This document shows positions 9,276 through 45,890 of a stretch of 48,528 nt of DNA, piece after piece. The stretch lies in NCBI GenBank assembly GCA_003427395.1, contig BFEA01000021.1, positions 677,560 through 726,087 on the forward strand, in the 5' to 3' direction. Each line of letters begins with the position of its first letter. Position 1 is the stretch's first letter. The notes beneath the pieces were generated by a model, which was not told the origin of the DNA, made no database searches, and saw nothing but the letters and a program-made list of their open reading frames with translations. This DNA is from Chara braunii (lineage: Eukaryota > Plantae > Charophyceae). Both the position numbers and the translations under genes were made by a program.

Positions 9276-10859
9276 ATGGCCCCGAGGAACGCATCAGCGA
9301 AGGCCAGGCAAAATAGCGGGGTGGGCGACGAGGGGGAAACCAAGAGAGGCAGAGGGCACATCCCTAAGCTGAAAAGGCAGCGCGTTGAAGAGTCGAGCTC
9401 CGAGCACACTGCAGACTTCCAGCCAGAAGAAGTGGTGATGGTGGACGCGCAAGGTACTTCAGCGGCGCCGCGATTGGGTTTCGGGCGAGATGGGTTGACG
9501 AGGGAACAGGTGTCCGCTGTGAAGCAGAGCATTGTTGTTGGTGCTGCCGGGGCGTCGTAAAGGACCCCGAAGGCGGCAGGGGTTGTCATAACGGAGGTGC
9601 GCATCCCGAGGCAACTTCCCGCGGCGACGGGGCAGGGCCAGCCACTTCCACTGGAACAGATGGGGGCTTGATGGGGGGGGGAAGCACAACCCGCGCAAAA
9701 GGGCGATGCAATGGCGATCGGCACTCGGGCGGCGGCGGCGGATCGCAGTGGTAGAACCGGAGTCGCCGAAGGTGCGGGCGAGGAGAGGGTAGACGACGTC
9801 CGCCACGACGAGGGAAGAAGAGACGGGAAGCGGGAGGGCGACGACGACCGTCCACTTGTGACGAGGTTGAAGGGAGCCGCAAAGGAGGATGGTCTGGAGG
9901 AAAGATCGAAGTTGTGGGTTGATTGCGACTCTTTTTGGGGTCAGGGACCGGGGAAACCCTTGAGGGAGGCGGTTGGGGAGTGCGCGGACTACTTCATCGC
10001 AATCGCCAACGGAGACGCGTGAGCTGAACCGCCTGCGATGCTCATACTGCCGCCGAACGACGTGCCGCACTTCAAGATCGACGACCCTGCGCACCGAGAA
10101 CCGGCTCTGCGCAGAGCGCGCAACATCGAGAAACTGGTGTTGCGCGCCATCCACGGCGCGATCTTCAAATCGTCGTCGTGGTCGGCTGGATTCGCTCGTG
10201 CAGAGTTGTACATCAGTGTCAACATTGCCACAGACGCCGCACGAGCAGTTTGGCAGGGGCAGGAATGATCGAACGTGGTGTCCCCTGCACTCGTGTACCA
10301 CACTCTAGCGCTGAAGATGGACGTGCCTCTGTGGTTCGCGGGGGTGAAGATTGTGGATCGGCCAGAGGACGACAACATGGCGGCGCGGCAGGAGGAGACA
10401 GTTCTTCGCATCGCGGACTGCTGGACAGACGCACTGTGGTGTGGACAATGGGCGGACGACGGGCGCGTGAAACAGGAGAGGTTGTCTAGGCTTGTGGACT
10501 GTCTTTGGGCATTGTTGAGCGCGTGCATGTGGATCATGCGCATGGGTGGTGACGACGACCGTTCGCACTACGAGGCGTGCCTTTACTCGTCCCTGGTTGC
10601 CAAACCGACAATGATAGCGGCGGGGTCGTACATCTTCAACTGGCGGCGACACATCGTCGACAGCGCGAACCTCGTCTTGGATCGTATAGGGAAGGCTCAC
10701 CTCACGCTGGGAGAATACCCGCACTGCATTCCGGAATGGTGTGACTGCGGGTTGGTGTTCGGCCACAACGCGGCCCTGAAGAACGTGGCGAAAGCCGCGA
10801 AACACGGATGGATTGGCAGCGGGCCTGCGGTGGAGGAAGTGGGAGACGAGGACGGTTGA
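9276..10859 (+). pseudogene. Third Harbinger-internal gene of unknown function (~527 codons, 4 in-frame stops)
   Basis: ORF pieces 9276-9560, 9711-10022, 10038-10268 and 10275-10859 are all in one frame. They are split only by TAA 9558, TGA 9669, TGA 10020 and TGA 10266. Basic NLS-like segment KRGRGHIPKLKRQR and a Trp/Cys-rich globular-looking C-terminal half. Confidence 0.75.
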
Positions 10860-13671: not shown

Positions 13672-14345
13672 CACGTCCCTTGTAGACAAAAAATGACGTC
13701 CACCGCTGCCCACCTCTGTGCATGTATGCCGCCACGTGTTGAAGACGCCTGCAACCACGTCAGGAAGACAGCCCGGCCCAACGACGCGATTCTGATCGAA
13801 GCGTCCACCCACCGCCGCGGCGCTTGCATGTGGCGAACGCGACTGACGTCTTTGTTTCGTCGCGTCGACCACACTTGACGCACTGGCGGTGCGGCGCCAC
13901 TCAAATACGCAACCCGATGGCAAACGAAACCCTGGTCGGGCGTAGGCAGGCACGCACACCGCCCGCCTGTGCGCAGCCACCACGTCGCTTCGCAACATCA
14001 AAATTCAAAATTCGAATTTCGAAAGGGGATTTTCCCGTGTTGGCGTTTTATTTTCCAAGGGCCCGTGATGTCTTCCCGCCGTCCACGTTTTGGACCACCA
14101 TCAGAGCTACACGGACATCCCGAATCGGAGGTCGGACATTCCTCTCACGGTTGTGTATAATCTAATTAAACTGGCCGCGGGAGGGCCCCGAGGATTCGTC
14201 CTCGGGGCATTTCTCCGAGGACAGGTGGAACGGCACCTCCGAAAATAAAAAATTGCTCCGAGGATTCGTCCTCGGAGCCCGAGGACGCGCTGAGGTGTGT
14301 CGAACAATGCCCTTCATCCTCGGGGCATTTCTCTGAGGACAAGTG

Positions 14346-14382
14346 CTGTCTCTTATACACATCTAGATGTGTATAAGAGACA
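14346..14382. other. Nextera mate-pair junction adapter (assembly artefact)
   Basis: CTGTCTCTTATACACATCTAGATGTGTATAAGAGACA is two inverted Tn5 mosaic ends (last G missing) and translates as VSYTHLDVYKRQ. It is flanked by a ~128-bp duplication (14218-14345 and 14383-14510). Confidence 0.97.
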
Positions 14383-14851
14383 AGGACAGGTGGAACGGCA
14401 CCTCCGAAAATAAAAAATTGCTCCGAGGATTCGTCCTCGGAGCCCGAGGACGCGCTGAGGTGTGTCGAACAATGCCCTTCATCCTCGGGGCATTTCTCTG
14501 AGGACAAGTGGAACGACACCTCCGAAAATCAAAAAATGCTCCGAGGATTCGTCCTCGGAGCCCGAGGACGCGCTCAGGTGTGTCGAACGACGCCCTTAGT
14601 CAGTGTAGCAACTCAAACGTCGAATTACAGGGCAGATAAAACCCATTCATAAGAGAAGGAGACATGACATAGAAGGAAGATGACAAGACAGTACACAAAT
14701 ATCCCGAACGCTATAGGTTGCATCATTAGAAAACAGTGAAAGAACGCAACCAAGAACTCGGACCGAAAGTGAGCAAAGTTCATCGTCAAAACCCTGTCCG
14801 AGCGTCTGAGCAAAGCTCATCGTCAAAACCCTGTCTTAGCATCTGGCGGTT

Positions 14852-14899
14852 GACCCTACATGTTTCATCTGGCTGCCAGTGCCGGAAACGTCAGGGGTC
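14852..14899 (-). ncRNA. Degenerate minimal hammerhead ribozyme in the 3' end of copy A
   Basis: Minus strand: GACCC-CTGACGT-TTCCGGC-loop-GCCAGAT-GAAA-CATGTA-GGGTC. Stem I is GACCC/GGGTC as in copy C, and stem III is palindromic ACATGT. The core has an A9>T change. Confidence 0.65.
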
Positions 14900-15170
14900 T
14901 CAATCACGGCGGTGATAACCTGTGTGCCACCGCAGAAACTACTTATACGAAGAACAGTAGAGACCTAGGCACGAACCGTCATTCCCTAACAAGAACCAGA
15001 CAAGACAAAAATAAGGGACCCGTGGAACAGCAAGTACCACGGGACCCTAAGCGGGAAGCACTCGAAAAGTCCACAAAACAGTACCCTATTACAGTGCCTC
15101 TTTACCATGTGTCAACCAAAAGGGGCCAACGGTGCCCCTACGCCATGAGGCAAAACGCCCATCGAATCAA

Positions 15171-18141
15171 CTACAATGCCCCAATATCCTCGCGTTCGTT
15201 TAAACAAACACACCTACTCAAGCATCCGGGAGACATCCCCCACCCGGTCAAACATCTGACCCAACAGTCCCAGATGCCTCCAAACTTAAAAGAGAAATTC
15301 AACACAACATTATCAAAGTAATCATCAGTAAACCCACGAAGCCTCAATTCAATCTTCAGGGACAGAAGAAAGGCCCCTACTGCATCCTGCATACTGGAAA
15401 AACGTTTAGCACGATGCAAAAACGAAGTGATCACCGCCATTTTCTGCTGGCGACTGGTGTACGACGTAGCATCCTGCAGGTTCTGGAAACGAATCTTCCC
15501 ATTCCTCACCGAAACCTGATTCTTGTGTACCGCTGCACAACATACCCCCTCTGGATATCCAAGATCATCCACTACGCACCCCAGAAACCCCCAGGGTCCC
15601 GATCGGTTCGTGCACTCCAAAGAGAGGTTACTGTCATACGACCCCTCAAAGCCACCCAGAATCCTCCAGGCCTTCGTCTCCTCCGTCACATCTCCCTTTC
15701 TAAATTTAATAAAAACCGTCACATCATCGATTAAGCGGATCCCATGTACCACCAGAGAACGATCTGCATCCAACGACGATAAAAAACAAAATTCGAAATA
15801 AGCACAGAGCATGCATGCAAGGGTTGGACTTGAGGATTTGCCCATCGCAATGTCGATGTTCTGTCTCAAGATCTCCCCACCTACCTTAGTGAAGGTGTTT
15901 GCCAAGTCAAAGGCCACGAAATTTGAGACCACCCCAAAATCAAAACAGTCCCATCCTTCTAACTTCCTCCCCCGTAGGAGCTTAGCACCTTTCCCATGCT
16001 TCTTGATCAAAACTCTATCAATACCTTCTCGGTGCCAGAAATCGATCAGCCACTGAAGAGCCTTGATAATCAATTTGTGAGGGAGATTACAGAACAGCTC
16101 CTTCACATCATACGCACCAATCAACAGTTCCTCACCATCAACCACATCCTTGTTAATAGCATCAACCTTGCTGATCAAAAGATCAGTACTCTTTATATTG
16201 AAGTGGGACCATTTCGGTAATTCCCATACCATTTCATTCACCACCGTTGACACCTTCCTGCACCCACGCACATTTCCTTCCGAAAAGGAAGGACAAATGG
16301 GCCGCCATTTCGAAACATCCTTATGCTTCGGAATTGCATAAGCCTGACCCATCTTCCCATTGTCATCCCACTTGGCAAGCACCGACAAGCCCTTCTCCAT
16401 GTAGCTTTGCTTCAGACTACCCAAAACAACAGACTCCTCTCGACGTACCACCTCAAAACAAGCATTTGACAGAAACAACTTATCCAATCCGCTTCGATAG
16501 ACCACTGGGCAACACACCAAGATGTCACCTGGATTGTGATCAATGGGACGCGGACCAAACCCTCCATCCTCTTGATCCAATCCAAGACCTCCTTCAAACG
16601 TACATGTGGCCCGAGCATGTCGCACCCAACCCCATCATTCAAACATCCAACCAAATCATTAGCCCGAGGAGCCGAAATCACAAAACCGACACAAGACAGA
16701 CTTTCCGTAATCTCTTTCAACCGGCGCGTGGTCAAATTCTGCGTATTAGGGACAAAGATGTTACGAGAGTTCTCCAGCCATGCAGGAACGAAGCCAAGCT
16801 CACTTAATCGCCAACAAACATGACCCCCGACTCTGGTCCAAGAACTGTCCGACGCCGAACAAGAACAAATCGAGGAACCCGACTGTGCGAAGTTCCTGAA
16901 ATTAAACATAATATCACCAATACTCTTGTTCTTGACCAAAACGACCCGTGAACGTCGAACCACCAACTCTTTCCAGTCGACGTTAGCCTCCGCTTACTTA
17001 AATGACTTCTTACAAAGATCCTGAATCCCTGGTTTGCTCAAGCGATGATCATAGGTAATACGGACAGTGAGTCTGCGATGAACATTATCATCGAATCGCC
17101 TACGCAAAACACAGGAGATAATCAGGTGGAGAGAACAGCGCGTCCTCTTCTCATAAAAAGCACGAATCGCCAGGAAGCAGCGAATCAACGGTCCAAAATC
17201 CCATGCATACAAATCTTTGCGACAAGATGGATTGGCTTCAAATAGCACAGCTTAGAACAGAGGGAGACAATGTTAACAACAGTCACCACCGAACCTTCCT
17301 GAAAGCACCCTCGATATTTTTAAAGAATACCAGAGTCACCAGCCGATCGAACCAACGAAGTTCCGAACCGACGTTTCACAATTTTCCAGTCATCAATAAA
17401 ACGCCCACCCGTTCCACAGTAAATATCCACAAAGGTCTTTAAGTTATTCAAGCTCAAACACTCATCCAAGATACGTATCAATGAGACCGAAGCACGTCCT
17501 GGCGACGAACGAAACGAGAGATGCGGATCAATAACGGTGTTCCCAAGAAATCTCATTTTCTTCAACTTCTCCCTACACCGCTCACGCTTACCCTTCCTCC
17601 TCCTTTTGCCCTTGCGTCTCACATCTCTCGAGTTAAGGCTCGGATTGGCCAGGTGAATAAAGTTCTTTTCAACAGAAATGAGGTCATACTGCTCACATCT
17701 ACAGAAAGGTAACATCACATACTGGGCCAATCCACATCGTCGTAACCATGCATACAATCGGTGGTTCCGCTTACCACCCTCAACCACCTCTGAATTCAAA
17801 CATCGATACAAATGCTCATTCCACCGAACGGCCAGAGATCGACCAGTAGATCCCAAGTACACATGCCGGGACCAAGGAGAAACCAAAGCATACACCCATG
17901 CGCCATCACCCGTATCCAAATCCTCATCATCACGTAGCACTCTCTCCAGGTAAGATTTGAAATTTTCCGCCCACTGAATAGCATCGCAAAGAATAAGTTT
18001 CAGCACCACAAGCCGATAAAATCCATTAAACTCTCTATTACGCAGAAAAAAGTCGGAGTCAGCGTCCTTACCTATGCGATGCTCATGAAGCCTCCTAGAA
18101 ATAACCGCCCATTTCCACAAATGGTCGCGCTCGGGGACCAC
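15171..18141 (-). pseudogene. Copy A ORF2: GIY-YIG endonuclease + Penelope-type reverse transcriptase
   Basis: GIY-YIG: WVYALVSPWSRHVYLGST...RWNEH...E...LN. Linker CSC...GGHV. RT motifs PIDHNPGD, AYAIPKHKD..KWRPI, AYDVKELF, QNIDIAMGKSSSP, RLIDD, FLG. Several frameshifts. Confidence 0.9.
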
Positions 18142-18143
18142 AC

Positions 18144-19548
18144 CTAAAGCTCAGCAGAGCAGCCATCTCCCAACTTCGAAGATTCAACAACAGGCGGGGA
18201 GTCCTCAGAAACTTCATGGACAGGGACCTCCTTGTCCGCCTCCTTACCATCATTGTTGTTACTGCCAAATGCTTTGTTAGCCCGATGTTCCGTGAGATCA
18301 TGAATCATAAGCTCTATAGCCCGAAGCTTTAATCCGGTTTCTCGACACAGCATCTCCAGCCCAGACTTTTTATAATTTCGAAGATCCTTCTTCTGAGCTT
18401 CGACATGCTGAAAGCGTTCATTCACCCCACCCGAGGCAGCATCCCCATCACCTAAATCCCGTCTGGGGGTGGCTTTCAAACCTTTTCGAGTGGATCGAAC
18501 AGCCGCCGCATCCAGCCTCGTTTTCAAGTTAGTCCCACCTCCTTCACCACGTTGACCAGTCCCAACAGCTAGCACCTTGTTCAATTGCTCTTTCAACTTA
18601 ACCACTTCTCCTTCCGCTACGACACGCTTCCCTTTCAACACTTCAGCCTCGAGACCAGCAGCCCTATGCATTTCCTTCATCCTGCATACTCTTGCTTCCA
18701 TTTATGCGCTTCGCGGATGTTATCCGTCCAACGAGGTTTTGGTGATGCGCGAGGCGGGCCACCCGGAGTGTCGATCGCAATGCTGCCACACTTATTGCCT
18801 GGCCTAAGAGCTTCACCCTTCCACAGTTCGGTTTTTTCCCAGTCCTTAGCATTCTGCAGTTTCAGTCGTCCTACTTCGATGTGAAGGTCATCCAACTCAG
18901 CCTGAAAGTTGTTCCTCGTTACGGCTGCAGTCCTGAATTGCTCAATCTCGTGCTTCATTGCACATAAATCATCTTCCGGAAGACGTTTATCCGAAACCTG
19001 CCTCTTCAACTCCATGATCTCTCTCTGCAACTTAGTCACCGTATCTTCATCCGTTACACCATCGTCTGACGTAACCAATCACCTCAGCCTATCATTCTCC
19101 TTTTTTATCTTATCCAATTCTTCTCAAGGCTGCACTCTTCTGATTTCTCCTTCAAACGAGGATAATTCTTCTCCTCCATTCGTTTACCCAAACGCGCACT
19201 CATCTTTGCTTCCAAGCGCTCCTGTTCTTTCCTCCACTCCTCCTTTCGATCCTCTTCCTCCTTCAAGGTCTTCTGCCGTTGTTCTTCTTCTTTACGCTTT
19301 GCTTCTCTTTCTTCATCTGCCACTGTCTTGGCAAAGCACCGATCCAACTTCTCTTGATTCAGTCTCGAGAAATTAGGACGACCAAAGGAAGAATTAGAAT
19401 TGCAACCAGATCCCGGGGCATAACCTTGAGAGGAAAACCCTGTATTAGGCACATCACCGACAAGAGCCGGGAAGGCAGGAAGAGGAATAATATTGGCCGA
19501 CAAAGTCGACGAGCCACTCTCACGTAGTCTAATCTCTACGGAGGTTAC
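18144..19548 (-). pseudogene. Copy A ORF1 (coiled coil, ALRPG motif, SAP-like helix), 5'-truncated
   Basis: Fragments 19105-19503, 18677-19078, 18144-18701. WKGEALRPGNK matches WQEEALRPGKR of copy C. LRNYKKSGLEMLCRETGL is SAP-like. Confidence 0.75.
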
Positions 19549-20022
19549 TACGTAGAAAAAAGTGTGGCCGCTGAGGAGCCCGCTCTTTTTTCATTTCGCA
19601 GCCAAAGGCTGCATCTTACCCCGTTGCTTACCCCGTTGCACTTTGTCGTGTAGCGGGGCTTTCCTAAAAAAGAATGTAGACAACGGGGTTTATGGGGCGT
19701 CCAGAAGGTGTGCGGTCGGGGGCAGGGCACAGACCGTCGGCGCAAAGGTTGGAGTGGGGGCGACCAACAGTAGGTGGCAATAGGTTAATCTTTGGTGGCG
19801 GCGGGCCTTTCCTGTTTGAGGTTGGCCGGCCTTCGTTTTTTAGTTTGAGTGGCCGGGTTGTTTTGGGGGGTTGTTTTGGGGGGTTGTTTTGGGGCAGGCG
19901 GGGTCTAATAAGTGACACGGAAGGGATGGCCAAACTCCCTCGCTCCACCACTCACAGACTATGCAAAATGTGAATGAATCTTCCGCTAGAACATGGAAAT
20001 ATACACCGCCATAGTTTTTGTC

Positions 20023-20177
20023 TTTTGTGCACGTGTTCAGTAGTGCAGCGAGGCCCAAAGGTAGGGTTCAAGTCCTTTGTGCATGTGCTGAGTAGTGCAG
20101 CGAGGCCCAAAGGTAGGGTTCAGGTCTTTTGTGCATGTGCTGAGTAGTGCAGCGAGGCCCAAAGGTAGGGTTCAGGG
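20023..20177. repeat. 52-bp tandem repeat, 3 copies
   Basis: TAGTGCAGCGAGGCCCAAAGGTAGGGTTCA at 20041, 20093 and 20145. Confidence 0.9.
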
Positions 20178-22930: not shown

Positions 22931-23510
22931 GGTAGTGTTTACTCGAAGCAATATGGCAATCAAGAGATTGCTCACAAAACACTCAACGTACAAATGCACG
23001 TTCACAAGTACACAGTGTAACCATTGAAACAAAATTGAAAGAACTCAGGTATAGCAGGATAGGTGTCCCCGACGCCGCGTTTCAATGACAGGCACGTCAT
23101 CATCTTGAGGGGGTTTCCTACATCATCCCCCAACTATGCGTTCTTCCCCATTCCCGCTTCCATTCGCGTACGTACCGCAGTCCGGACTGCCCATACCCAC
23201 GTTAGAACGTCAGTCCTGAAAGAGGCTACTGACTATGCAAACTTCCTACTTATTGGAACGTCAAACTTTTTTGTCCACTAGGCCCGAATAGTATGTACCT
23301 GCGGCCTCGTGCGTGTCCCCTCGTACGTGAAAAAGTTATACAAACTAACACTACGGTCTCTAGTCTATCTGAGAAAAAAAAACAAGACAACTGCATTTCG
23401 ACAAGTAGTGCGTATTCGAGCCCCCGAAGAAATCCTGAAAAGTCGATAAAATCGATACGACTCCATTGGTCCCCGCAGACCTTATATACGAAAGCCTGTC
23501 CAAATTTTCG
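22931..23510 (-). repeat. 3' pseudo-LTR of copy B
   Basis: Colinear match to the interrupted copy at 28173-31683. Confidence 0.88.
23067..23113 (-). ncRNA. Minimal hammerhead ribozyme, B 3' pLTR (core mutated)
   Basis: Minus strand: CCCC-CTCAAGA-T-GATGAC-GTGCCT-GTCATT-GAAAC-GCGGC-GTC-GGGG. G5>C relative to CTGAAGA in the other pLTR. Confidence 0.75.
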
Positions 23511-23674
23511 GAACCAACCGCCTGCTGCCACCCATCATCCAAAATCACCTCACCAACTATTAAAATCCCAAAATTCAAAAATCCTAACCGAACAAGTAAA
23601 CAATGGGAAACGTTCGACATTGGTATTCCTCAACTTCACAGTCCAGATAGGAGGAGAGACGGTTAACGGGGGCC

Positions 23675-26600
23675 TAAATATTCGCCGTTTTCGTTGGCAA
23701 TTGCGGCGCCACTATTTGCTCCCAAATTGTCGCCCGGTGCTTTGCGAACCGCTCTAGTACTCTCATGAAGAAATCATGCTCAAAACCTTTAATCCTCAAT
23801 TTTTTTTTCACGGTCAAAGCACGTATAGGGATAGTTGAAGGAATTGTGGTATTCTTATCTATCCGATGTAAGTAACTTCCGATGATTGAACTCTTCTGTT
23901 TTTTTTAGCTCCATGATCTGAATGTTTGTCCGTTCTGGAAGACAATCTTCTCTTCTGCCCACAGACTCTGTTCGTCCTTAGATTGTTGGATACTACCCAC
24001 GCATGGGAGGCATCCAGACACCTTGATCTCACATCCCAGAAATTCAAAATTCCCACATCCATCATTGGTCCACTTGAGCACGAGATTATCCGGGTAACAT
24101 TCTTTGAACCTTTTTACGATATCCGCCTTACTTTCTTGAGGGATAGCCCCCAAGATCCACTCCACGTCGCCCATGAGACGTATATCGAAAACCTGGTTTC
24201 GCCATCTGCCCAGGCTTACGATGAAGGTATACTCTGCATATGCATAGAGAATGCATGCTAGGGGTGGGCTTGTGTTTTTTCCCATCGGGATTCCCACGTC
24301 CTGCCTTAGCAGTACTCCTGTAGCTTTCGTATAAGTGTGCTGCAGTTCCAGCGCAACAAATTTCCTTAAATCGTCCAGACTAAGCTCTCTCCTGCAGTCT
24401 TTCCCCGTCGTCCTCCCAGACGTACTCCCCTTCCCTCTCGGATTCACCATAATTGAACGTCTGCCCTTCTTCTTGTGATACTCCACAATCCAATCCACAA
24501 CTCCCCTGATTTTTTCGTGAGGCAATTTACTGAACATTTCCTTAATATCAAATGGCATTGCTTCCACCGATCCCTCACTCCGAGTCCCTTTCAACTTCTT
24601 GTTGATTCGAGCTAAGCGTCCAACCATGTGCTCTACTGCTTGCATGTTGAAGTGCCAGTCCTTTGGCAAAGTGAATAGGAGGTGGTTAAGAGCCTTCGCC
24701 ACCAATCTTAATGTTTTCACCATGGGATCATTAAATGCAGGACAGATTGGGCAATATCTGTCGAGGTCCTTGTGCTTTGGAAGCACATAGGTCTTGCCAA
24801 ATTCCCCTTTCTTGTCCCATCTCACAAAATGTTTCAGTCCCTCTTTCTCCACATCTTCTCTGATTTCCCTAAGAATCACTCCTTTCGTACTAGTCATCAC
24901 ACGATAACCTGGATTGTTGGCAAAGGTATCCATCATCGCCTTGTGATAGACCGCTGGGCATATCGCCACTGTTTCTTCTGGATTTTTATCCAACGGTGTT
25001 ATGACGAACCCTGTCAATTCCCTCTTCACACTTGCAACCTCCATAACACTAATCCTGTCCTCGTTATCCTCCGGACTTGAGATACATGCGACCAACCGTT
25101 CTCTACTAACTTTCGAAATATTACCACGAAAATTATACCAATTAGCAAAGCTATCTTCCACCTCATGCTTCAACAACTTTGCACGGTCCGCTACAGTCGC
25201 CCGTGGAATGTCGTTGGCATTCCCCATGCGAACATGCCTATCCTCGCCTTTACTGAATCGGAATCGCACGTGCCCTCCCTCCCGGGGGTAGGGCAAATCT
25301 GCACAAGTACAGATCAACACCTTCTGAGCCGCATAGGCTCGTTGGTTGTGCAACAGGTCCTTAACTGCCAGATTCTTCGTCTGGACTATGCGAACCTTCC
25401 TCCGTGCTCGATTCCTAAAACACTCAGGCAACTCACATGTCGTGATACAGTCGTTGACCACCTTGTGCAATTCGACTAGCTTAACTCTAGCATCGTACTT
25501 AGTCTTCACCACCAATCCTTCCCTGACTATCCTTGACACTTGGCGCCTCATATACTTGCGAGTAGACTTCTTACCGAAATCTCTAACCACGTTGTACAGT
25601 CTTATTACAACTTTAAGGTCCCATTCGTAGATACTTGCCAGCTTCCCCGGGTTTCTCATGATCCCTATCAGTATTTGCTTTAACTTATTACCTTGCGGTT
25701 TCCATGCTCGCAGATGTACCACTTCAAGCAGACCACCCTGTTCAAGTTCCACTTTGAGTTCCTTTAAAACTCCCGTCCATCCTCCAATTTTTACTGTTGA
25801 TTCTCCAAAGGCCTTCCTAACCTTCTGCCACCTGGGAAACCACGTGTTACCCCCATTAGCTTCTATCGGGAAGGTACGTATACCCTTCTTATCGTACTTC
25901 GTCAGTATGCTCGGCAAATTCGAGGACCATACTCCGTCATCCTTGAATCGAATAGGTATAACAACCCTTTGACTACCTCCCTCCATGTCCTCCCTCGCTC
26001 TCCACCACTCCGCTCGGCCTTTCCTACCCCTTTTTAGTCTCTTTCTTCCCGACCTCTTTGCTCCATTGGTATTCAAAAATGGGGACCATTGTGTTATATA
26101 CAAATTCTCCAGATCAACAGGGTCAGATTCGCTGGTTGTATCTAGCGGCAGTAGGACGTAGTTAGCGGCTCCAAAGTATCCCAACGATCTATAGAAGTGA
26201 GTGTGTATACGTGATTTGCTTGCTCGGAGGTGTTCCCTCCATCTTATGTTTAGTGCTCTATTTGTCCTCCCGATATGTTGCAACTTACAAAATGGGGAAA
26301 CCGCGACATAGACACAACATTTAGCGTTGACAAAATCTACCCCGTATACTTCAAACAATCTTCTCCATAACGACCATTTCGTCAAAATGGACATTTTTTA
26401 TTTTTTGAACGAAATTGATCCCAGTTTTTTGGCCGAAAACTCGTCAAAATTTGTTGTTCCTGAAAACGCTGGACCCCCTGGCTGTACATGGATCTAGCTT
26501 GAGACCAGGCACCTCCAGGCAGGACTGCTTGGAGGTACCTGGTCTGAAGCTAGATCCATGTACAGCCAGGGGGTCCAGCATTTTCTGGACCCTCAGGAAC

Positions 26601-26900
26601 AACAAATTTTGAAGAGTTTTTGGCCAAAAAACAGGGTTTCAATTTCGTTCAAAAAATAAAAGATGTCCATTTTGACGAAATGGCAGTTCCATGAGCTAAT
26701 TAGCTTACGGTTTCATTTGATCTCACCTCTAACTGATAGATTGAAGATGCATAATCTCATCAATTCTTCGACATCTGCATTTACGTTTGGAAACTTGCAT
26801 CGCAAGCTCGTCAAATTCCGTACTAGGCGCCAAAGTATTTTCACCCAATCTCTAGCTAATGCTTCACCCCCTTCTCCGGGTTCATCCACAGTTGTGTCAT
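23675..26900 (-). pseudogene. Copy B ORF2: GIY-YIG + Penelope-type RT, split by a MITE
   Basis: The 829-aa ORF 23905-26394 has CVYVAVSPFCKLQHIGRT...RWREH, CTC...GGHV, PLDKNP, YVLPKHKD, PFDIKEMF, GIPMGKNTSP, RLMGD (DD mutated) and FLG. The frame continues upstream of the MITE (LWRLVRNL...IK*NRKLISSWRR). The C-terminal SYLHRID segment follows a stop. Confidence 0.9.
26369..26688. mobile_element. 320-bp fully palindromic MITE with 4-bp TSD
   Basis: Near-perfect inverted arms (AAC..CCATTTCGTCAAAATGGACAT...). CCAT is duplicated at 26365-26368 and 26689-26692. Excision restores the ORF2 frame (LISSWRRLFE). Confidence 0.88.
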
Positions 26901-26902
26901 CC

Positions 26903-28005
26903 TCATCTTTCCTCAGTGATTTTGATCACCTCCTCCTCCTGATGTGCCACTTCCTCAAAGTTGAGTCGTGTGCGATGACTCGCAATATCGAAGATGGCAT
27001 CAATTTTTCCCGCATAGCAAATCCCTTCCTCCTTGCAGACTGCTTGCAGTTCAGCCGCGTCGAAACCCTTGATCTCCTCCATAACCTGGTTTCGGTATCT
27101 CAGCTTTGCTACTGTCCCTCTAGTCGCTGGCGTCTTCATTTTTTCCACGATCGGCAACAACTTAGTCTTGATCTTCCTTTTTGACCTTGTCATCCGTGTC
27201 GTCAGGTTCACTGACTTTAACTTTGAATTCCTGGTTTCGATGACCGCTTCGGGGGGGTCAGCATGGGAGAGTTGTTCTCTAGAACAGGTTTCGGCCCACG
27301 TTTCCGCTTTACTGTCGTCGTCCTCTTGCCAAACTTCTGCAGCTTAACCTCTATACTGCTCCCGCTGGTCTCTATCTCGGAGCTAGACCCTTCAGAGGAC
27401 ACACTAGCTGCCTTTTGTTTGCCTTTGTTCTTCTTGCCCTTTGGCGGTGCCGAAATAAATTTCGCCTCCAACGTGTCGCATAACTCACTTATTTTAATGG
27501 ACACTGAGGTCCACACTCTTATCGATCTCCGCCATTCTCATCTCCTCTTTTATGGCCTTCTCAGTTTTTTCCGTTGCCTTCCTTTCCTTAGCTCGTTTCT
27601 CCTCCTCCGCCCTTTGCTTGGCTTCCGCTTTCTCCCTCTTGCGACGCTCCTTTTCTTCCTTCTTAGCCCTCTGGTTTTGTACAAACTCAGTCACTACCTC
27701 CAGATTACGTCCCAGCTCTTGTATCTTTGACGTCACTTCCGGATCCTGGAAGTATGATCTCCTCTGGCAGGGTCGGTCATATCTCGCTAGTGATACCGAC
27801 CTACCACGCCGTGAATCTAACGATGATGACGGACGCTCCAAATATCTAGCCCTCTTGGGGTGAGGACATTGGTTTGTGTAGTGTCTCTCTTCCCGACAAT
27901 TAAAACACGTCGGCCCTCTTCTCGTTCCTCTCTCATCTCGCCCTCTCATTTTCTCTGATCTTCATCCTCCCTCCGTTGGGGGTCCTGCTGCTCGCGTCCC
28001 GCCAT
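26903..28005 (-). pseudogene. Copy B ORF1: gag-like CCHC zinc knuckle, coiled coil, SAP-like motif
   Basis: CFNCREERHYTNQC (CX2CX4HX4C), an E/K/R-rich helix and IKGFDAAELQAVCKEEGICYAGKIDAIFDI. Frameshifted fragments. Confidence 0.8.
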
Positions 28006-28236
28006 CCTACGAACCTTAGTAGTTCGCCCGCGTCTTCACTCTCAAAGTACTTCCTCCTTAGATGTCTCCAACAACAACTCCTTGACTCGAAGGTTCGCAC
28101 CTCCAAATCTCATAAAGCACGCTCACTCCTCCCGGTGATCTCCTTCAGGTAAGTTCACGTGTGCCGTCAACAGGTAGTGTTTACTCAAAGCAATATGACA
28201 ATCAACAGATTGCTCACAAAGCAGTCAACGTACACA

Positions 28237-28786
28237 GGGTCTCGTTAGACACTCCTAAAAGTGTCTGTTTTTAGGATTGCATTTTGGTTGCACGCAATCC
28301 TAAATCTAATTTTGAGATCGAAAATGTGAAAACGGCGTTAGGAGGAGTCCTAAAGGATTTAGGATTCCCCAGGCAAAATCGTCCTAAATTTTCTAGTAGC
28401 CCCCAACCTACTGAAAAAATTAGGATTCCCGTGTTTCACGGACTCGTTGCGTCGCGCGCATGGCACCGTCGACACGGAGTTGCTGGTGCAGAAGTGGTCC
28501 GTCGGGTCAGTGGTTGGACATCAGAGGTTTTCTGCGGGTCGACGCGGGCAATGGCCACGAACGGCAGCCGTTGGCGGGGATTGGACGGACATTGGCAGGA
28601 ATGGACGCAAATTGGCGATGCGGCTGCGTATACGCATATGAAAACCTGTCGCGGAAGACCTTTTAGGACGAATCCTAAGAGATGATTTTTAGGATTGCGT
28701 GTAACGACGTCGCACAAAATCCTAAAAATCCTTTAGGACTCGTCCTAAAGATTTTAGGATTCTTTTAGGAGTGTCTAATGAGACCC
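28237..28786. mobile_element. 550-bp Harbinger/Tourist-like MITE
   Basis: TIR GGGTCTCGTTAGACACTCCTAAAAG and CTTTTAGGAGTGTCTAATGAGACCC. The empty site in the other pLTR (CAACGTACAAATGCAC, ~22984) shows 3 extra bp (ACA/AAA, an imperfect 3-bp TSD). TCCTAA/TTAGGA subterminal repeats. Confidence 0.88.
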
Positions 28787-28861
28787 AAATGCACGTTCAC
28801 AAATAAACAGTGTAGCCATTGAAACAAAATTGAAAGAATTGAGGTACAGCAGGAGAGGCGT

Positions 28862-28908
28862 CCTCGATGCCACGTTTCGATGACAGCCACGTCATCATCT
28901 TCAGGGGG
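28862..28908 (-). ncRNA. Minimal hammerhead ribozyme, B 5' pLTR
   Basis: Minus strand: CCCC-CTGAAGA-T-GATGAC-GTGGCT-GTCATC-GAAAC-GTGGC-ATC-GAGG. Intact CTGANGA/GAAA core, perfect 6-bp stem II, substitutions in stems I and III. Confidence 0.8.
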
Positions 28909-29212
28909 TTTCCTCCATCATCCCCCAACTATGTGTTCTTCCCCATTCCCACTTCCGTCCGCGCACGTACCGGCAGTCCGGACTGCCCATACCCACGTTA
29001 GAACGTCGGTCATGAAAGAGGTTACTGACTATGCACACTTCCTACTTATTGGAACGCTAAACTTTTTGGTCCACTAGGCCCGAACAGTTTGTACCTGCGG
29101 CCTCGTGCGTGTCCCCTGGTACCTGAAAAAGTTATACAAACTAACACTACGGTCTCTAGTCTATCTGAGAAAAAAAAAACAAGACAGCTGCATTTCAACA
29201 AGCGGTGCGTGT

Positions 29213-38000: not shown

Positions 38001-38085
<85 letters not shown>

Positions 38086-38305
38086 TATCCACACACAAAC
38101 ACAACGAGTGACACGCACGTGAGCACCCATACATACAGTCACACACACACACACACTATCGACTCGCACACACACACACACACTGTCTGCACACACACAC
38201 ACACACTGTACAGACACACAGATGCACTGTCTACACAAACAAACACACACCGACAGCCACGCCCACATACACACACATACTCACACTCACACTCACACTC
38301 ACACT
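37884..38305. repeat. (GT)n followed by (CA)n microsatellite tracts
   Basis: Direct observation. Confidence 0.9.
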
Positions 38306-38342
38306 GGGAAGGAAACAGTAGCAAGGCTAAGGCAAAAGTTCT

Positions 38343-38842
38343 GACTTGTCGTCGGTTCGTAAGTATCTGACCTGTTTTCGGGCTTTTGGACTCGGATTTG
38401 TTAGTTTTTGCGACCAGGTTAGTTGCTAGTTTTTTCCTTTCTTCTGTTTGTAGTCCTATTTTTGGAAGACTGTAGTCTCGTGAGCGTGACTTTTCTTGGG
38501 CAGCGGTGGTTGATGCTGGAACTATTCACTTTCAACTATTAATACGCAGTGTACTGTTTACTCGTCGCACTTGCGACGACCAAGACCCCCGATGAGGCTG
38601 GTTGGCGGGCCAGCCGAAACGTCGGGTCCACGCCGTTGTACGTCATTGATAAATTTCAATACTTACGTTGCGTCCGGGTTACATGCACCTACGTGTATTG
38701 TCTTTCCCGTCATTTTCCTGCTCCATTCATTTACTTCTTCCCCTTACTCTATCCCTCTCCCACTCCACTGTCTTGGTTCTGATGTATGATCGGTCGATGA
38801 GTGTTTACCTTGAAGTCAGCTTGTCGTTTCCTCGTCAACTGC
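38343..38842 (+). repeat. 5' pseudo-LTR of copy C
   Basis: Highly similar to 43573-44094. No TG..CA ends, PBS or PPT seen. Confidence 0.93.
38584..38628 (+). ncRNA. Minimal hammerhead ribozyme, C 5' pLTR (U4>C variant)
   Basis: GACCC-CCGATGA-GGCTGGT-TGGCGG-GCCAGCC-GAAAC-GTC-GGGTC. Confidence 0.8.
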
Positions 38843-38953
38843 TTCATTTCACGGAGTAACCACCGTAGGGATAGCACTACATGTCTGTGTGGCTTCGACA
38901 TTTCTATGGTAACGCTTTGTCACCTTTGTCGTCGGAATCTGGTTTCTAACACC

Positions 38954-40296
38954 ATGGCTTCCAACGTCCCTAGTTCTTCTATCGTCCGAACTTGCTACAA
39001 CTGTGGGGATCCAGGGCATTTCGTGAGATGGTGCCCGCACCCCAAGCCTGCTAATCCCAATTTTGCTCTTGTCCCCACACATCCCCCCTTGCTTACCCTC
39101 CCATCTTCTTCTGCATCTAACTCTAATGCTATCGTTAATACCAACGTTACGGGGAAATTTGCTAGAGGTTTTGGATGGAGCCAGGCGAAGCAACGACTTG
39201 ACTATTTGGAGCATGTCATCGTTGAGATGAAGACGAGACATGATGCAGAGGTTGAAAAGGAGAAGAACCTTAAGGCCGATGAGGAGAAAGCTCAGAAGGA
39301 GAAAGCGGAGGATGAAAGACGTGAAGCGGAGAAGAAGGATCGGGAGGAATTCCGCAAACAACTCACTGACTCGATGAATGCCAGGCTGGATGGAGTTGTT
39401 GACAAAGGAAGCAGCAACGAGGTTGAGACCTTGCGTAAGGAAGTGGAGAAGTTAGGCGGAAGGGTGCTACTTGTTGGCGCTTCGTCCAGCTCTGTCCAGG
39501 GTGCTATGCAAGGCAACGATGGTCTGCTCGCCAAGTTGCTTGCTGAACAGGAACGAATGAAGAATCAACTTGACGAGGCACTTTTGGCAAAGCGGCGTGT
39601 GGAGTCGATCGAGAACGACATGAGTGCGGTCATTCGAGCTCGGGATGAAGCCCGAGCAGATGCTGAGAAGTGGCAGGAGGAGGCGCTGCGGCCTGGCAAG
39701 CGTGGTTGTATCACGCTTAGTACTCCAGCTACGAGGACTGCTTCGAAGCCCTCTACATCGACACCGCTCAAGTCCCCAGCTATGTCGGTTGACCTAAAGA
39801 AGATCTCGGATTTGCACCGACTGAAAGTAGAGACGATTCAGGAAATGCACATTGAATTTCGTGAGTTTAATGCATGGCGAGAGGCTGAGCAGGATTTGGA
39901 GAAGGCGAAAGAGAAGATTGTGAAAATGGAACGTGAGATGTTACTAAAGTCGCCACGATCGAACCTGCACTCCAAGATGGACGGGCTTGTACCGGGAAAG
40001 GCAAAGAGAAGATGGTTGCTGATAGGAGTGGGTCGGACGATAAGGACAAGGATGCTTTTGCTAAAGACGAAAGGAAGGCACTGCGAGGATTAACAAAGGA
40101 TGCATTGATCGCTATCTGTGACAAGGAAGGAATTAGGTATGTGGGGGTGAAGCAGACTGTCGATGACATTGTCGCAGATCGTGTCAAGAAGCCATTCCCT
40201 CCAGCTACAGTAGAGGTGTCCGAAGATTTGGCGGAGGGTGCCCTTGAGAAGTCATCCGAGGGAGACTCTGCTTCTTACTGTCTCTCCCGGACGTGA
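38954..40296 (+). pseudogene. Copy C ORF1: CCHC zinc knuckle, long coiled coils, SAP-like motif (one frameshift near 40000)
   Basis: accATGg start. CYNCGDPGHFVRWC knuckle, E/K-rich helices, WQEEALRPGKR and LRGLTKDALIAICDKEGIRYVGVKQTVDDIV. Confidence 0.85.
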
Positions 40297-43200
40297 CGAC
40301 GCTCTGGAGCTTATTTCGCCGTCTTTATTACTTCAGGACCTCCTCACCTTCCCATTTGCGTTGCAGAGAGGTTAATTATTTTCTTCAGCTCATTGTTGTT
40401 GGTCTTATTCTGGGTGGTTGTATTCCTTGGGCTTCAAAATTTGAAGGGCACCTACTGAATTTTTGGCAGACGCGTGGAGATGATTTTGTCAGCGGTCTGT
40501 TGGTTTATTTACTTGTATCACCAATCTACAGGCATGTTTATATTGGTAGCACGAGTCGTGATCTGCCCTCTCGTTGGAGTGAGCACGTATACCGTGCTAA
40601 GAATGAGTCACTTATTAACAATGGTCGCCGCAAGGAGAGATTGTATGGTTGGATGAAATGCGTAGGTATTGAGGGTTATGTGGCTGTTCCTTTGTCATCT
40701 TGTTCGAAGGAGAATCTGCTGATTGTTGAGCGATTTTATATTAAACAGTTTTGTCCTGCACTTAACACTAGGTAGCGACCAAGGCGTCGACGTCGAGGTA
40801 GACCGGGTAAGAGAGAACGACGTCAAAGGAGGAACCGCAGGCTGTCGAGCTCTCCGGCGCTCGTACCTTCTGTTGATGGTGGTGCCTTTAAATCCGGTTT
40901 GTTGTTGTTTCATTCATCCACTGAAATTGTGTCGCAGAGCTTGCTGCGTATCTTGGATTACTGTCGAGACCGCCATATTCATGAGCTTTCTGTTGTTTGT
41001 AGGGGAGGTTCGTTGTGTATCGATTCATGGAAGCTTCTTAGGCGTTGTTACGGTTTTTCGGTGATTTCATGCAGGTTTGGTACGGATCAGTTGCGTTCGT
41101 CAAAGGGATGGTTTGTCGATGGTGCTTTCATCTCTTTTCGTTCTGTTCGCCCTTTCTGTAATCAATCTCTTTGTCTTAAAGCCCCTCTGTCTTCCTTCCT
41201 TAGCAACCCTTCGTCTAAACGAACACTTGTCACCTGGGATCTTGACTTGCTTATCTCTGCTTTCTCTGCAGTTAGATGCTTTTCGGATAAGCGTACTTGC
41301 TTTCGACTTCGGTTGATTCTTTCCAAATATATCTCCTCCAGGTTCAATCTTTCTATTCGTAAGCGGCTTGTCGTTCGAATTACCTATGATGTGGTGTTCT
41401 GCAAAAGCGAGATTCGTAGTGTATGTGCTAAGATTATTTGGAAGTTAAGTATTAATAAGCAATGGCAGTCTATGTTGGTGCGAAGGATGCGTGTGGTATG
41501 GCGGAAGAATCGTACGATCGGGGATCGTATCCATAACTTTCGTAGTTTTTCTAAACAGACCTCTTATGAATGCACTTGTTCTTCCGTTGACCCAACTTTG
41601 GCCCGTGTGGGTGGGCACGTGGTTTTCCGACTCAGTGAGGATAATTCCTTCCCACCATGGATGAGCAATTCTAAAAATATCTTACGACCTGCTGCGGGAG
41701 ATCCTATTGGTGCATTGCGAAGGCAGATTAGGTCCGCATTCCTGTCCTTTTTTGAGCTGGATTCCGGGCCGGCATTGTTTGAGTTATCTCATTCGGAACT
41801 CGGCAGTTGTTTGACCAAGGCTTCCGTTGACTCCTTCATTTCAGAGTCTATGCTAGTGAGCAGGCGTGTCGTTTTCAGGGTCTGGTTTATTGTCCGATTA
41901 ATCACAATCCTGGCGATCCATTGGTTTGTTGCCCTGTTGTGTTTGGGGCAGGTATGAGTAAGCTCTTCACTTGTAACTCCTCTTCCTGCGTGAGCCCATT
42001 GATGTTGATGACCTTTTTGGACGTTGTGGTTCGTTGCATAAGAGTTTGGGTTTTGGTAAGATTGGGAAATGGGATGCGCACGGCAACTTTGGTAGTGCGT
42101 ATTGTTTGCCTAAGCATAAGGATATTAGTCGATGGCGGCCCATTTGCCCTTCACATTCGGAAGGTGTTGCTCTATGCGGAAAGCGTATTGCTTATGTTGT
42201 CAATGAGCTTCTTTGGCGGTTACCTAGATCTATGCATTTCAATCTTCGTAGTACCTCTGACTTTGTCGAAGGGATTAGCTTTGTAAATGAGACGATAAAG
42301 AAGAATGATCTCCTGTTGGGGGCTTTCTTTGATGTAAAAGAGATGTTCTCGAATCTGCCCCATAACTCGATTCGGAGGGCCCTGCAATGGGTCATCAACT
42401 ATTGGCTTGGGGATGGTTTCACTGGTGTACTGGTACGTAAGCATGGTAAGACTGCACGCTTGACGAGAGGACGGTCTGAAGACAGTTGAATTCTTATTAA
42501 ATTCTCCACTTTGTTCAACTTCGTCTCTCATGAGCTTGATCACACATTTGTACGTGCTTCTGGTATGTTGCTGAGACAGGTGCTGGGCATTCCGATGGGC
42601 AAATCGATCAGCCCTGCCCTTGCTTGTCTACTTTGTGCATTCAACAAATATAGTTTTCTGTCGTCCTTGAGCTCTGATCGCAGGTTGATTGCTGGCTTTA
42701 GGATTGTGGATGATGTCTCAATCTTTGTACGTTCTTCCAAACTCTCCTCTCCATCTCTTCTCAAGGCACAGTCTATTGTTGATCGCTTTCGCAGATGCTA
42801 TGACCCAAACTTGACGTTGGAGCAGACGAATGACAGCAGCAGCTGGGACTTCATTGGCTGTACCGTCAGAGTATTTGATAATCCCTGCAGAATTGGGTGT
42901 GTGGCGTTGCATAAGAACCAACGCGTAATTTCTGAGCGGGGTTTGATTTTTCACAGTCTACAAGGTTTCTCTTCTTTCTCGAGTCGTCAATAGAAGATGG
43001 TCGTGATCACTTCCTTTCTGTACCGGGCCCGTGTCTACACCAATGTTCCTGGTCTGGAGTTTGCTTTCTTGCTAACCTTGAAGCATGAGTTGTGGTTGAG
43101 AGGATATCCTGACATCTACTTGGATGTCTCTCTCGAGAAATTTTCTCGGAAATTCTCAGATTGTTGGGATCATTGGTTGGGGATTTTGACTAAGTGGGAT

Positions 43201-43302
43201 CGTCTTTTCTCCTTGAAGAAGGTTGTTTCAGGTGCTGATTTTCATAAGCCCGCATTAGGGTCGTGTGACTGGACTTATCTCTTTTTTTTGGTTTGGTTCT
43301 GA
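40293..43302 (+). pseudogene. Copy C ORF2: GIY-YIG + Penelope-type RT
   Basis: LVYLLVSPIYRHVYIGST...RWSEH...E..YI....PALN, CTC...GGHV, AYCLPKHKDISRWRPI, FFDVKEMF, QVLGIPMGKSISP, RIVDD, DFIG, SFLYRA. Stops at 40775, 42489 and 42993, frameshifts at ~41850-42030. Confidence 0.92.
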
Positions 43303-43572
43303 TCGCCGGTCTTTGCTTTTGCTTTGTTCTGTTTGTTTTTTCCTATCGATTTGTGTGTTTCGTTGGCTTTGGGTTGAGTAATGGGTTTTGGTAGCTTTAT
43401 GTAGGGGGACCCACGGAACGTGTTTGGGCCTACTCGGTCGGTGCTGGGTCGCTGGAGAAAGTTGGAAGTTTCGTATGCAGTGGTTCGAGTTCAATCTGTT
43501 GTTTGGCCTTTGGTTTGTTTGAACTTAGGTTTTGCCGATGGATGCCGTCTCCTTTTGACAATTTTCTCAGTC

Positions 43573-44094
43573 GACTTGTCGTCGGTTTGTAAGTATCTGA
43601 CCTGTTTTCAGGCTTTTGGCCTCGGATTTGTTAGTTTTTGCGACCAGGTTAGTTGCTAGTTTTTTTTAGGTTAGTTGCTAGTTTTTTCCTTTCTTCTGTT
43701 TGTAGTCCTATTTTTGGAAGACTGTAGTCTCGTGGACGTGACTTTTCTTGGGCAGCGGTGGTTGACGCTGGAACTATTCACTTTCAACTATTAATACGCA
43801 GTGTACTTTTTACTCGTCGCACTTGCGACGACCAAGACCCCTGATGAGGCTGGTTGGCGGGCCAGCCGAAACGTCGGGTCCACGCCGCTGTACGTCATTG
43901 ATAAATTTCAATACTTACGTCGCGTCCGGGTTACATGCACCTGCGTGTATTGTCTTTCTCGTCATTTTCCTACTCCATTCATTTACTTCTTCCCCTTACT
44001 CTATCCCTCTCCCACTCCACTGTCTTGGTTCTGATGTATGATTGGTCGATGAGTGTTTACCTTCAAGTCAGCTTGTCGTTTCCTCGTCAACTGC
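43573..44094 (+). repeat. 3' pseudo-LTR of copy C
   Basis: Direct repeat of 38343-38842 with a ~21-bp internal duplication (AGGTTAGTTGCTAGTTTTT). Confidence 0.93.
43836..43880 (+). ncRNA. Minimal type-I hammerhead ribozyme with canonical core
   Basis: GACCC-CTGATGA-GGCTGGT-TGGCGG-GCCAGCC-GAAAC-GTC-GGGTC. 5-bp stem I, 7-bp stem II, palindromic ACGT stem III, GUC cleavage triplet. Confidence 0.9.
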
Positions 44095-45890
44095 AAGGCA
44101 AAAGTTGTTCATTTTATTTTTTTGTATAACATAGTTCTATTTTTTTTTTTTTAAATGAATTTTATAAAGAACCTCGTTTTTTTTTGTTTTTTTGTTTTTT
44201 TTTATAAAGAATTTCGATGTAATCCTAAGGCAAAAGTTGTTCAGTTTATGTTTCTGCATAGCATAGATTTGTTTCGGAATTTTTTGAGTTGTTTTTTTTT
44301 TTTGGCCATTCGGCCTTCAGACAGACTATCCGGGGAGGACGTCTTTAATTGGCCGCATGGTGGCAGATCCAGGCTATTTGCAGAAGCTGGCTTTCGAGCA
44401 AGGGATGACCATCGTGCTGAACCTGCTGTGGGAAATCCAACACCGTGGGGCCAAGATCAAAGAGGAATGGGACTTAACGGCGATGAACATAATCCGATCA
44501 GACAACCCTGGACGGTCAGTGGGGTCCCGAACGTCCGATCTGGTAACCTAGGAAAAGAAAGAAAAAGGACATATCGGACATTGTTCTCTGGCGCTCACTA
44601 AGGCGCGAACCAACTTCCCCGAAGTTCCTAACCACTGCCTACCTTCTGTCGAGGGACCAAGGAGAAAACCAAGAACAAGGGACTGCCATTCAATTTATCC
44701 CCGACCCCCCCCCCCCTCCACGTACCCCCAATCCCGGTTGCGCAGAAGATGGCGCTTATCTGAAAAGAGCTCGTCACAGGCCTCCCAACGAGCAGAGCAA
44801 ATAGACTTTTAGGGGGGTTAGGGTTTTAGGGTTTGGGGGCTTTGCCGAGCCGCATACGAGTGAAGCATATGTTTGATAAAAAGAGGTCATTTGATCTTTG
44901 CTTCGCTGGCTTCTCCCATAACACTATATGTTTGATAAAAACAGGTCGTTTGATCTTTGCTTCAAAAAAAAATAGAAAAAAAAAAAAAAAGGGCACGACA
45001 GTGCAGCCTTTTGAGGCCCAGAACATGACCTTTTGACTAGACCATAGTGACCGCAAGGGTCAGATTACTGGGGCCCGGTGCAAACGGCACTGGCAACGGA
45101 CGTTGGGTTAGTGAGGAAAATAGGGACTGTTTGGGACCCGCCCGACGCGGCTGTATAGCCGGGTCAGGAAAAGCACGGTCCAAAATGGCGAAGATAAGAA
45201 TGACTGCGGTAACATCTTCTATAACAATATCATCACTTCTACGAGAGTCTTGCACTCTTCAGGAAGGTAAGTGTCAGGCTGAGTCTGACGTGGTTTCTGT
45301 TCTCTCTCCCGACATATCCCCTTTGTCTTCTCTCTTTTCCACAACCGCCGTGCATTGCGAGCCAAGTTTCATTTGTGTGGCCGCACACTTATCTTTCCTT
45401 CTCTCTGCCCGAGGGGTTGGGGAGGGAGAAGGGTGGGAGGAGGGGTCCGTCCGGCTGGGCATGAGGAAACGCAGGGTTTGGTGGATCAAGCATGGGCAAT
45501 GGAAGCGAGGAGTGGGATAGAGGCAAGGATTTAGGGAGAGCGGATCTACCCCCTTCATATGACAACCTTGTTTTATCTCTGTCATTGTGAAGGTCGAGCT
45601 GATCGTAGAGGAGTGGGCCCGACTGTTGATGCTGATGTTATGCCCGCACCCCTGAAATCATTTTGCTGTATGATCTGCACATCCCTCTATTGGGGAAGAT
45701 GATAATTTTTTTTTGTGGAATTACGATGATTGACGGTTTGCCCGCAGGTCGAGGCTCTGTTATTTCCACAATGATATCTCCCTTTTATCTCGTGTTCATA
45801 TCCGCCATTCATTGATTCAATCCAAGAGTCGAGGGTTTCCCCCTCTACATCACTCTTGTGTTACTTTTGGCAGTGGTAGTAGGAAGACAC

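Follow-up and report, generated by a model that had tools for sequence, protein, structure and literature searches.

Three Chlamys types of Penelope-like element (PLE) were described in Chara braunii by Craig, Yushenova, Rodriguez and Arkhipova (2021, Mol Biol Evol 38:5005; PMC8557442). The Chlamys signature was given there as an N-terminal GIY-YIG nuclease without CCHH or CX2-5CxxC, a CxC motif and a DK motif without a fixed third residue, together with an insertion-in-fingers domain (IFD) and (CA)n targets, to which Chlamys insertions are biased. Chlamys-2_cBra, the second of these types, was described as containing a canonical 3′ hammerhead ribozyme and an upstream gag-like open reading frame (ORF) with a zf-CCHC (PMC8557442). 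The stretch analysed here, referred to as the window, comprises 48,528 nucleotides of C. braunii (assembly GCA_003427395.1, contig BFEA01000021.1) and was found to contain an element, copy A, at 38341-44094. Copy A is read as a dead two-ORF PLE with an N-terminal endonuclease, of the published Chlamys-2_cBra type, with a probability of about 0.9. The layout was published in 2021 for the same genome, and the architecture is therefore not new.

Copy A was found to share with Chlamys-2_cBra the species and assembly, the N-terminal GIY-YIG, the CxC motif, the reverse transcriptase (RT), the 3′ hammerhead, the upstream zf-CCHC ORF, the pseudo-long terminal repeats (pLTRs) and the microsatellite-associated insertion, and no defining feature was found to differ. 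The signature features checked, namely the N-terminal nuclease without CCHH or CX2-5CxxC, the CxC, the DK motif and the (CA)n targets, were all found.

The 5′ pLTR was found at 38341-38842 (+) as a 5′-truncated upstream partial copy corresponding to the 3′ end of the unit, and the 3′ pLTR at 43573-44094 (+) was found to contain a 22-nt internal duplication relative to it. The direct repeats (38343-38842 and 43573-44094) were 93% identical over 522 columns and 97% identical in ungapped blocks. An exact 12-bp target-site duplication, AAGGCAAAAGTT, was present at both outer ends, the left copy at 38329-38340 (+) and the right copy at 44095-44106 (+), and about 0.01 matches to this 12-mer were expected by chance from shuffles. 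A (CA)n-rich microsatellite at 38005-38330 (no strand assigned) lies directly upstream, reaches the left duplication and is the likely target context. Microsatellites were found to adjoin other copies too, (CT)n or (CA)n being present at the Chara loci L007 and L008, and the target duplication of locus L004 was matching at nine of 10 positions (12 of 12 in copy A). An additional occurrence of AAGGCAAAAGTT at 44227 is part of a 48-nt local repeat in the 3′ flank, in which 44095-44142, including the target-duplication word, was repeated at 44227-44274, 132 nt downstream, with 83% identity.

Between the repeats, the gag-like ORF1 was found at 38954-40296 (+), starting with ATG at 38954 and containing a CCHC knuckle at 38987-39040 (zf-CCHC in Pfam, E 5.6e-6), followed by long helices and an acidic tail. 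A single frameshift near 40012-40090 interrupts it, and at 40279-40281 TAC stands where intact relatives have their stop. ORF2, which carries the endonuclease and the RT, was found at 40248-43302 (+) in a decayed state. Its frame opens at 40248, in the -1 frame relative to ORF1 and with no ATG. Stop codons interrupt it at 40773, 42487 and 42991, and two or more frameshifts fall near 41920-42034. Copy A is dead, with damage in both ORF1 and ORF2. Broken ORFs were searched piecewise, and naturally intact relatives were used as references.

The N-terminal region of ORF2 was short and conserved across families, followed by a GIY-YIG endonuclease domain at 40503-40772 (+). The PF01541 match of copy A had an E-value of 7e-5 and 23.5 bits against a cut-off of 22.6, and the matches of the two further window copies, B and C, were weaker; the R, H, E and N positions of the domain were visible. 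No CCHH finger and no CX2-5CxxC linker was returned when the nuclease regions of copies A, B and C were scanned by regular expression. A basic stretch was found between the GIY-YIG domain and the CxC...GGH linker motif at 41571-41618 (+), which holds the Naiad/Chlamys-specific CxC and was present as CxC..G(G)H in A, B and C. The RT core followed in pieces at 41921-43299 (+), its fold being taken from the sister copy C, with the motif A Asp at 42331, motif B (GIPMGK..SP) at 42586-42615 and the motif C DD at 42709-42714 (all +). The DK motif was PLDKN or PLDRN, without G, and the nuclease was N-terminal to the RT in all copies.

A preliminary description of this stretch had claimed pLTRs within an exact 12-bp target-site duplication, a CCHC knuckle in ORF1, an N-terminal GIY-YIG with the CxC..GGH motif and an RT in ORF2, and a Chlamys-type lineage, and each of these was borne out by the repeats and domains above, the last by the N-terminal nuclease, the CxC, the absence of CCHH/CxxC fingers and the DK motif without G. 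The two-ORF layout also held, whereas the extent of decay of ORF1 and ORF2 had been understated. The reading of copy A is correct, and the type of element is already known (Craig et al. 2021).

Four observations weigh against this reading. Copy A was matched to Chlamys-2_cBra by description and not by consensus sequence. No hammerhead match was returned by Rfam, either at the gathering threshold or at E<=10, and the hammerhead call is therefore based on a parse by hand and on the covariation seen between relatives. No relatives outside Chara were found, the word-based searches having returned Chara alone. Three raw oligo-dT RNA runs, nominally of the species, gave two partial reads on copy A in about 42 million records; these reads are no evidence for transcription and no valid test of silence.

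Chlamys and Naiad elements other than these occur in green algae, protists and invertebrates; they resemble copy A in the order endonuclease-CxC-RT, in the pLTRs and in the microsatellite targets, and Chlamys elements also in the absence of CCHH. Most of them contain a single ORF and no canonical hammerhead, whereas copy A contains two ORFs and hammerheads. Elements of the Athena/Coprina group may carry a coiled-coil ORF1 upstream, with the RT ORF separated by a frameshift with a pseudoknot (PMC8557442, Fig. 1 legend). They resemble copy A in this possible upstream ORF1 and in their hammerheads, but they have no endonuclease and reside at chromosome ends, whereas copy A contains a GIY-YIG domain and was inserted internally with a target duplication. 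The Penelope/Poseidon and Neptune elements share the TERT-related RT (TERT, telomerase reverse transcriptase), the GIY-YIG, the pLTRs and minimal hammerheads with a very short helix III; they differ in having one ORF only and in placing the nuclease, which carries a CCHH finger, at the C-terminus.

Copy B was found at 14610-19551 (approximate, -) as a full unit of a diverged family with no 5′ pLTR. The knuckle of its ORF1 was lost by deletion, its ORF2 was in pieces, and a degenerate hammerhead was present at about 14850-14900. Copy C, of a third family, was found at 22931-29210 (-) with pLTRs at 22931-23413 and 28173-29210; it contained an ORF1 with the knuckle at 27494-27949 and an open ORF2 of 829 amino acids at 23905-26394, and each of its hammerheads was mutated. 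The order ORF1-ORF2 was common to all three window copies, and their amino-acid identity was 25-49%, in line with the earlier claim of three highly diverged copies in 48 kb. As a separate observation, tandem repeats adjoin copy B at 20020-20174 and at 14218-14628, with 51-nt units (three) and 128-nt units (three).

A profile search matched 2166 cluster representatives (clustering at 50% identity), of which 388 reached E<=1e-30; this indicates that the clade is very diverse in the Chara genome. The cluster representatives sampled among the top 150 were from Chara in 10 of 10 cases, and the top 150 appear to be all from Chara. Where a source was recorded, the homologues of ORF1 and ORF2 were all C. 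braunii gene models. A feature search of the ESM Atlas gave GIY-YIG/RVT clusters of animals, as a lead only.

This divergence bears on the alternative that survives best, namely that copy A belongs to a two-ORF Chlamys lineage distinct from Chlamys-2_cBra and that the three window families are new or form a new subclade. The low protein identity of the window copies, the hundreds of 50%-identity clusters and the single representative named for the type in PMC8557442 point in this direction. However, that paper describes Chlamys "types" at high copy numbers and not one family, and the defining features are all identical, so that the alternative is judged doubtful and, even if true, would still concern a known kind of element.

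The RT pieces gave no RVT match in Pfam or NCBIfam, and a profile of the Chara ORF2s found nothing among the PDB sequences. Since the sequence searches miss the RT, the 829-aa open ORF2 of copy C was folded instead, with AlphaFold from an alignment of 42 Chara relatives (mean predicted local distance difference test, pLDDT, 85). The best 18 Foldseek matches of this model in the PDB were all TERTs (E 2.5e-10 to 1e-6). RTs of group II introns, DRT2, R2, LINE-1 ORF2p and retrons came next, and the top 50 contained neither an LTR nor a retroviral RT. In the model, the RT is thus structurally nearest to the telomerase RTs, a ranking by fold and not by tree; a TERT-first ranking is expected, PLE RTs and TERT being sister groups. 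In the interval between motifs A and B, where an IFD would be looked for, the model contained about 75-80 residues with two helices.

A non-LTR element, similar to the long interspersed nuclear elements (LINEs) and carrying an ORF1 and an atypical nuclease, would likewise show two ORFs, an ORF1 with coiled coil and zinc knuckle, an ORF2 without AUG and 5′ truncation, and R2 and LINE-1 RTs were among the fold matches. It is very improbable here: the E-values of the TERTs were better than those of the LINE RTs by 4-5 orders of magnitude, the nuclease was GIY-YIG and not of the APE or RLE kind, the CxC and DK motifs were of the PLE type, and the element was bounded by pLTRs with hammerheads and had no poly(A) or simple-repeat tail.

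The direct terminal repeats, the CCHC-knuckle ORF upstream of the RT ORF and the target duplication would also be found in an LTR or DIRS-like retrotransposon with true LTRs and a true gag ORF1. None of the ORF pieces of A, B and C matched a Pfam family of integrase, RNase H, protease or tyrosine recombinase, in line with the preliminary description, whereas a GIY-YIG was present. By fold, TERT was closest to the RT, and the Foldseek top 50 contained no LTR RT; the repeats carry hammerheads and terminate at the 3′ end of the unit, and copy B, a full unit, has no 5′ repeat. The RT fold and the domain content together already refute this alternative. The grouping of the RT with LTR/DIRS or LINE RTs, which the preliminary description had named as an outcome that would count against a PLE, was not what the fold ranking gave.

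The linkage of the two ORFs was followed in ten further Chara loci (L001 and L003-L011). L001, L003, L004, L007, L008, L009 and L011 were each found to contain a repeat with a hammerhead, an ORF1 with CCHC, an ORF2 with endonuclease and RT, and again a repeat. The same order was found in L006, with repeats lacking a hammerhead-core match, and in L005, with a hammerhead, short repeats only and assembly gaps; L010 contained both ORFs and no repeats within the fetched DNA. ORF2 was intact in L006, L007, L008 and L011 (921-980 aa), with repeat identities of 93-98%. Together with the window copies, ORF1 was linked to ORF2 in 13 of 13 copies and lay with it between the same repeats in 11 of 13, so that an inconsistent linkage, which the preliminary description had regarded as fatal to its reading, was not found. 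That ORF1 is a foreign retroelement fragment or host gene lying between the repeats by chance, as the different frames in copy A and the ATG-less ORF2 might suggest, is already refuted by this recurrence, an ORF1 homologue being present directly upstream of ORF2 in every copy of families diverged to 25-49% identity and the ORF1 stop lying 0-16 codons from the opening of the ORF2 frame in nine copies. In L008, the 3′ flank at 7374-7413 was found to consist of a Nextera adapter word and its reverse complement, an assembly artefact in GCA_003427395.1.

ORF1 of copy A was found to contain a conserved C-terminal three-helix domain at about 40040-40200 (+). The AlphaFold model of the intact ORF1 relative P0011 (438 aa) contained three long helices followed by the three-helix C-terminal domain, with pLDDT above 90 in these three helices, and an acidic tail. 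A "SAP-like helix" had been proposed in ORF1; the SAP family PF02037 gave zero matches in 19 ORF1 sequences at E<=1, the C-terminal domain found nothing significant in a profile search of PDB sequences, and Foldseek gave no match at E<=0.001. The SAP assignment was accordingly dropped, and the three-helix domain itself is real. ORF1 resembles the LINE ORF1 and the retroviral Gag in that a zinc knuckle and a coiled coil are encoded ahead of the polymerase, and in an expression of ORF2 that would be tied to ORF1, but no sequence or fold homology was detected past the 18-residue knuckle, with no capsid, RRM or CTD domain. As a description, the earlier wording of a gained "LINE-ORF1/gag-like" protein is fair; the gain itself is putative, and homologues of ORF1 were found in Chara only.

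Both pLTRs of copy A were found to contain a hammerhead, as had been claimed. The 5′ hammerhead at 38584-38628 (+) contained the core CCGAUGA, with a mutation of U4 to C, and the 3′ hammerhead at 43836-43880 (+) contained the intact core CUGAUGA with a predicted cut after C43875. The latter was found to contain helix I GACCC/GGGUC, followed by CUGAUGA, a helix II of 6-8 bp and GAAAC-GUC, and the helix III word ACGU was self-complementary; apart from the mutated core, the arrangement in the 5′ repeat was the same. The core pattern was observed four times in the window, against 0.5 expected. A further core match at 10776-10803 (+) contained CUGAAGA, a 5-bp helix II with a GAAA loop, and GAAAC.

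For comparison, 13 hammerhead sites were parsed from 12 elements, three of them being the window copies and the remaining nine further Chara loci (L001, L003, L004, L005, L007, L008, L009 and L011 among those named), some elements having two sites. The cores were conserved across the 13 sites except in the mutated A5, B3 and C3. Helix II was of unrelated sequence between families, yet a stem of 5-9 bp was present in every parsed site, and one clean G-C to A-U exchange was found between close relatives. Helix I was found to covary (GACCC/GGGUC, CCCC/GGGG and GCCUC/GAGGC), and helix III was a short self-complementary word in 11 of 13 sites (ACGU, ACAUGU, ACUAGU, ACCGGU or ACGCGU). A helix III of this kind is that of the minimal hammerheads of PLEs, which are reported as probably acting as dimers (Cervera and de la Pena 2014, cited in PMC8557442).

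A 19-nt word at 38854-38872 (+), directly after the 5′ pLTR of copy A, was found to be conserved in the 5′ untranslated region (UTR). It was near-identical in L003 and carried few changes in copy B (19532-19551, -) and L004, and in L003 and L004 it was also positioned directly after the 5′ repeats. The word was kept although the proteins of copies A and B are only about 40% identical, and it is a candidate promoter or RT-recognition signal.

The junction of ORF1 and ORF2 was found to vary between copies. In copy A, L003, L004, copy B and L008 the ORF2 frame was -1 to ORF1 and opened 1-16 codons before the ORF1 stop; the junction of L005 was also -1, with the ORF2 frame opening 10 codons after the ORF1 stop. 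In L001, L006, L007 and L009 the ORF2 was in frame behind a single stop, which was TGA in four of four (L001:6225, L006:4150, L007:4284 and L009:3566), with the context TGA-CGG in L007 and more stops within about 54 codons after the TGA in L006. The stop of the out-of-frame junctions was TAG or TAA. L011 was in the +1 frame, against -1 in its close relative L008, and both contained an ORF2 AUG 7-32 nt after the stop, whereas the ORF2 of copy C had its own ATG. In total, the ORF1 stop was found 0-16 codons from the opening of the ORF2 frame in 9 of 13 copies, and a conserved peptide containing LW started within about 10 codons of the stop in most families.

Splicing between ORF1 and ORF2 was considered, given a GGTAAG before the stop and, about 110 nt past the stop, a pyrimidine tract with CAG. 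The intervening sequence codes for the peptide LW...RRL...L.VV, which is conserved across families, and splicing was therefore rejected. A programmed -1 frameshift was likewise considered, and no X XXY YYZ heptamer was found in the overlaps of A, B, L003, L004 and L005. The close relatives L008 and L011, both with an intact ORF2, differ in frame (-1 and +1), which argues against a frame-specific device in that family.

The ORF1 stop was found in the loop of a predicted hairpin of 11-14 bp in copy A (40255-40315), L003 (L003:8290-8345) and L004 (L004:8300-8360), and with other sequence in L008 (L008:3880-3935), with z-scores of -1.9 to -4.6. The hairpin was absent in L001, L005, L006, L007, L009, L011 and copy B, and its covariation support was weak. 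It is proposed, tentatively and at less than even odds, that in the two-ORF Chlamys elements of Chara ORF2 is made by recoding or translational coupling to ORF1, with devices differing by lineage: the in-frame TGA, which suggests readthrough; the short -1 overlap with the ORF1 stop in the hairpin loop; and an AUG of ORF2 shortly after the stop. LINE-1 ORF2 is expressed by reinitiation, and the retroviral polymerase by readthrough or frameshift. In the main text of PMC8557442, no coupling of ORF1 and ORF2 was found described for endonuclease-bearing PLEs, and the ORF1-ORF2 junction, the ORF1 C-terminal domain and the self-complementary helix III were not found there.

What was shown above is the set of sequence parts, the order in which they stand, their presence in further copies and the fold of the RT; a life cycle for the intact relatives may be sketched by analogy with Penelope and other PLEs for every biochemical step. 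A tandem or pLTR-bearing copy would be transcribed, and the hammerhead in each terminal repeat would cut the RNA to unit length, probably acting as a dimer because the helix III is a short self-complementary word. The ORF1 protein, with its zinc knuckle, long and possibly multimerising helices and small C-terminal helical domain, would coat the RNA, and the ORF2 protein would be translated by coupling to ORF1. The GIY-YIG of the ORF2 protein would then nick the DNA beside microsatellites, and the telomerase-like RT would copy the RNA at the nick, giving the 12-bp target duplication. The copying of a second template could give the partial tandem resembling LTRs. No indexed RNA run was found to contain the copy A stretch.

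Copy A, which adds another decayed example of a type already published from this genome, carries little weight alone. The remaining interest lies in how a second ORF, often AUG-less, is expressed by an endonuclease-bearing PLE, for which Chara supplies many natural variants. The annotation of C. braunii is also concerned, as many of its "genes" with CCHC-type, GIY-YIG or reverse-transcriptase domains are element pieces or artificial fusions, and some gene models of the homologues were found to be chimeric with host domains.

U6 small nuclear RNA (snRNA) sequences were found at two places. At L001:10096-10135 a U6 snRNA fragment, whose sequence begins near position 24 of U6, directly adjoins a related element at its 3′ end, and this junction could be a chimeric retrocopy or an insertion beside a U6 copy. 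In the window, Rfam matches to U6 snRNA were found at 4668-4828 on both strands, where a U6-like gene was split by an inverted duplication of its own middle.

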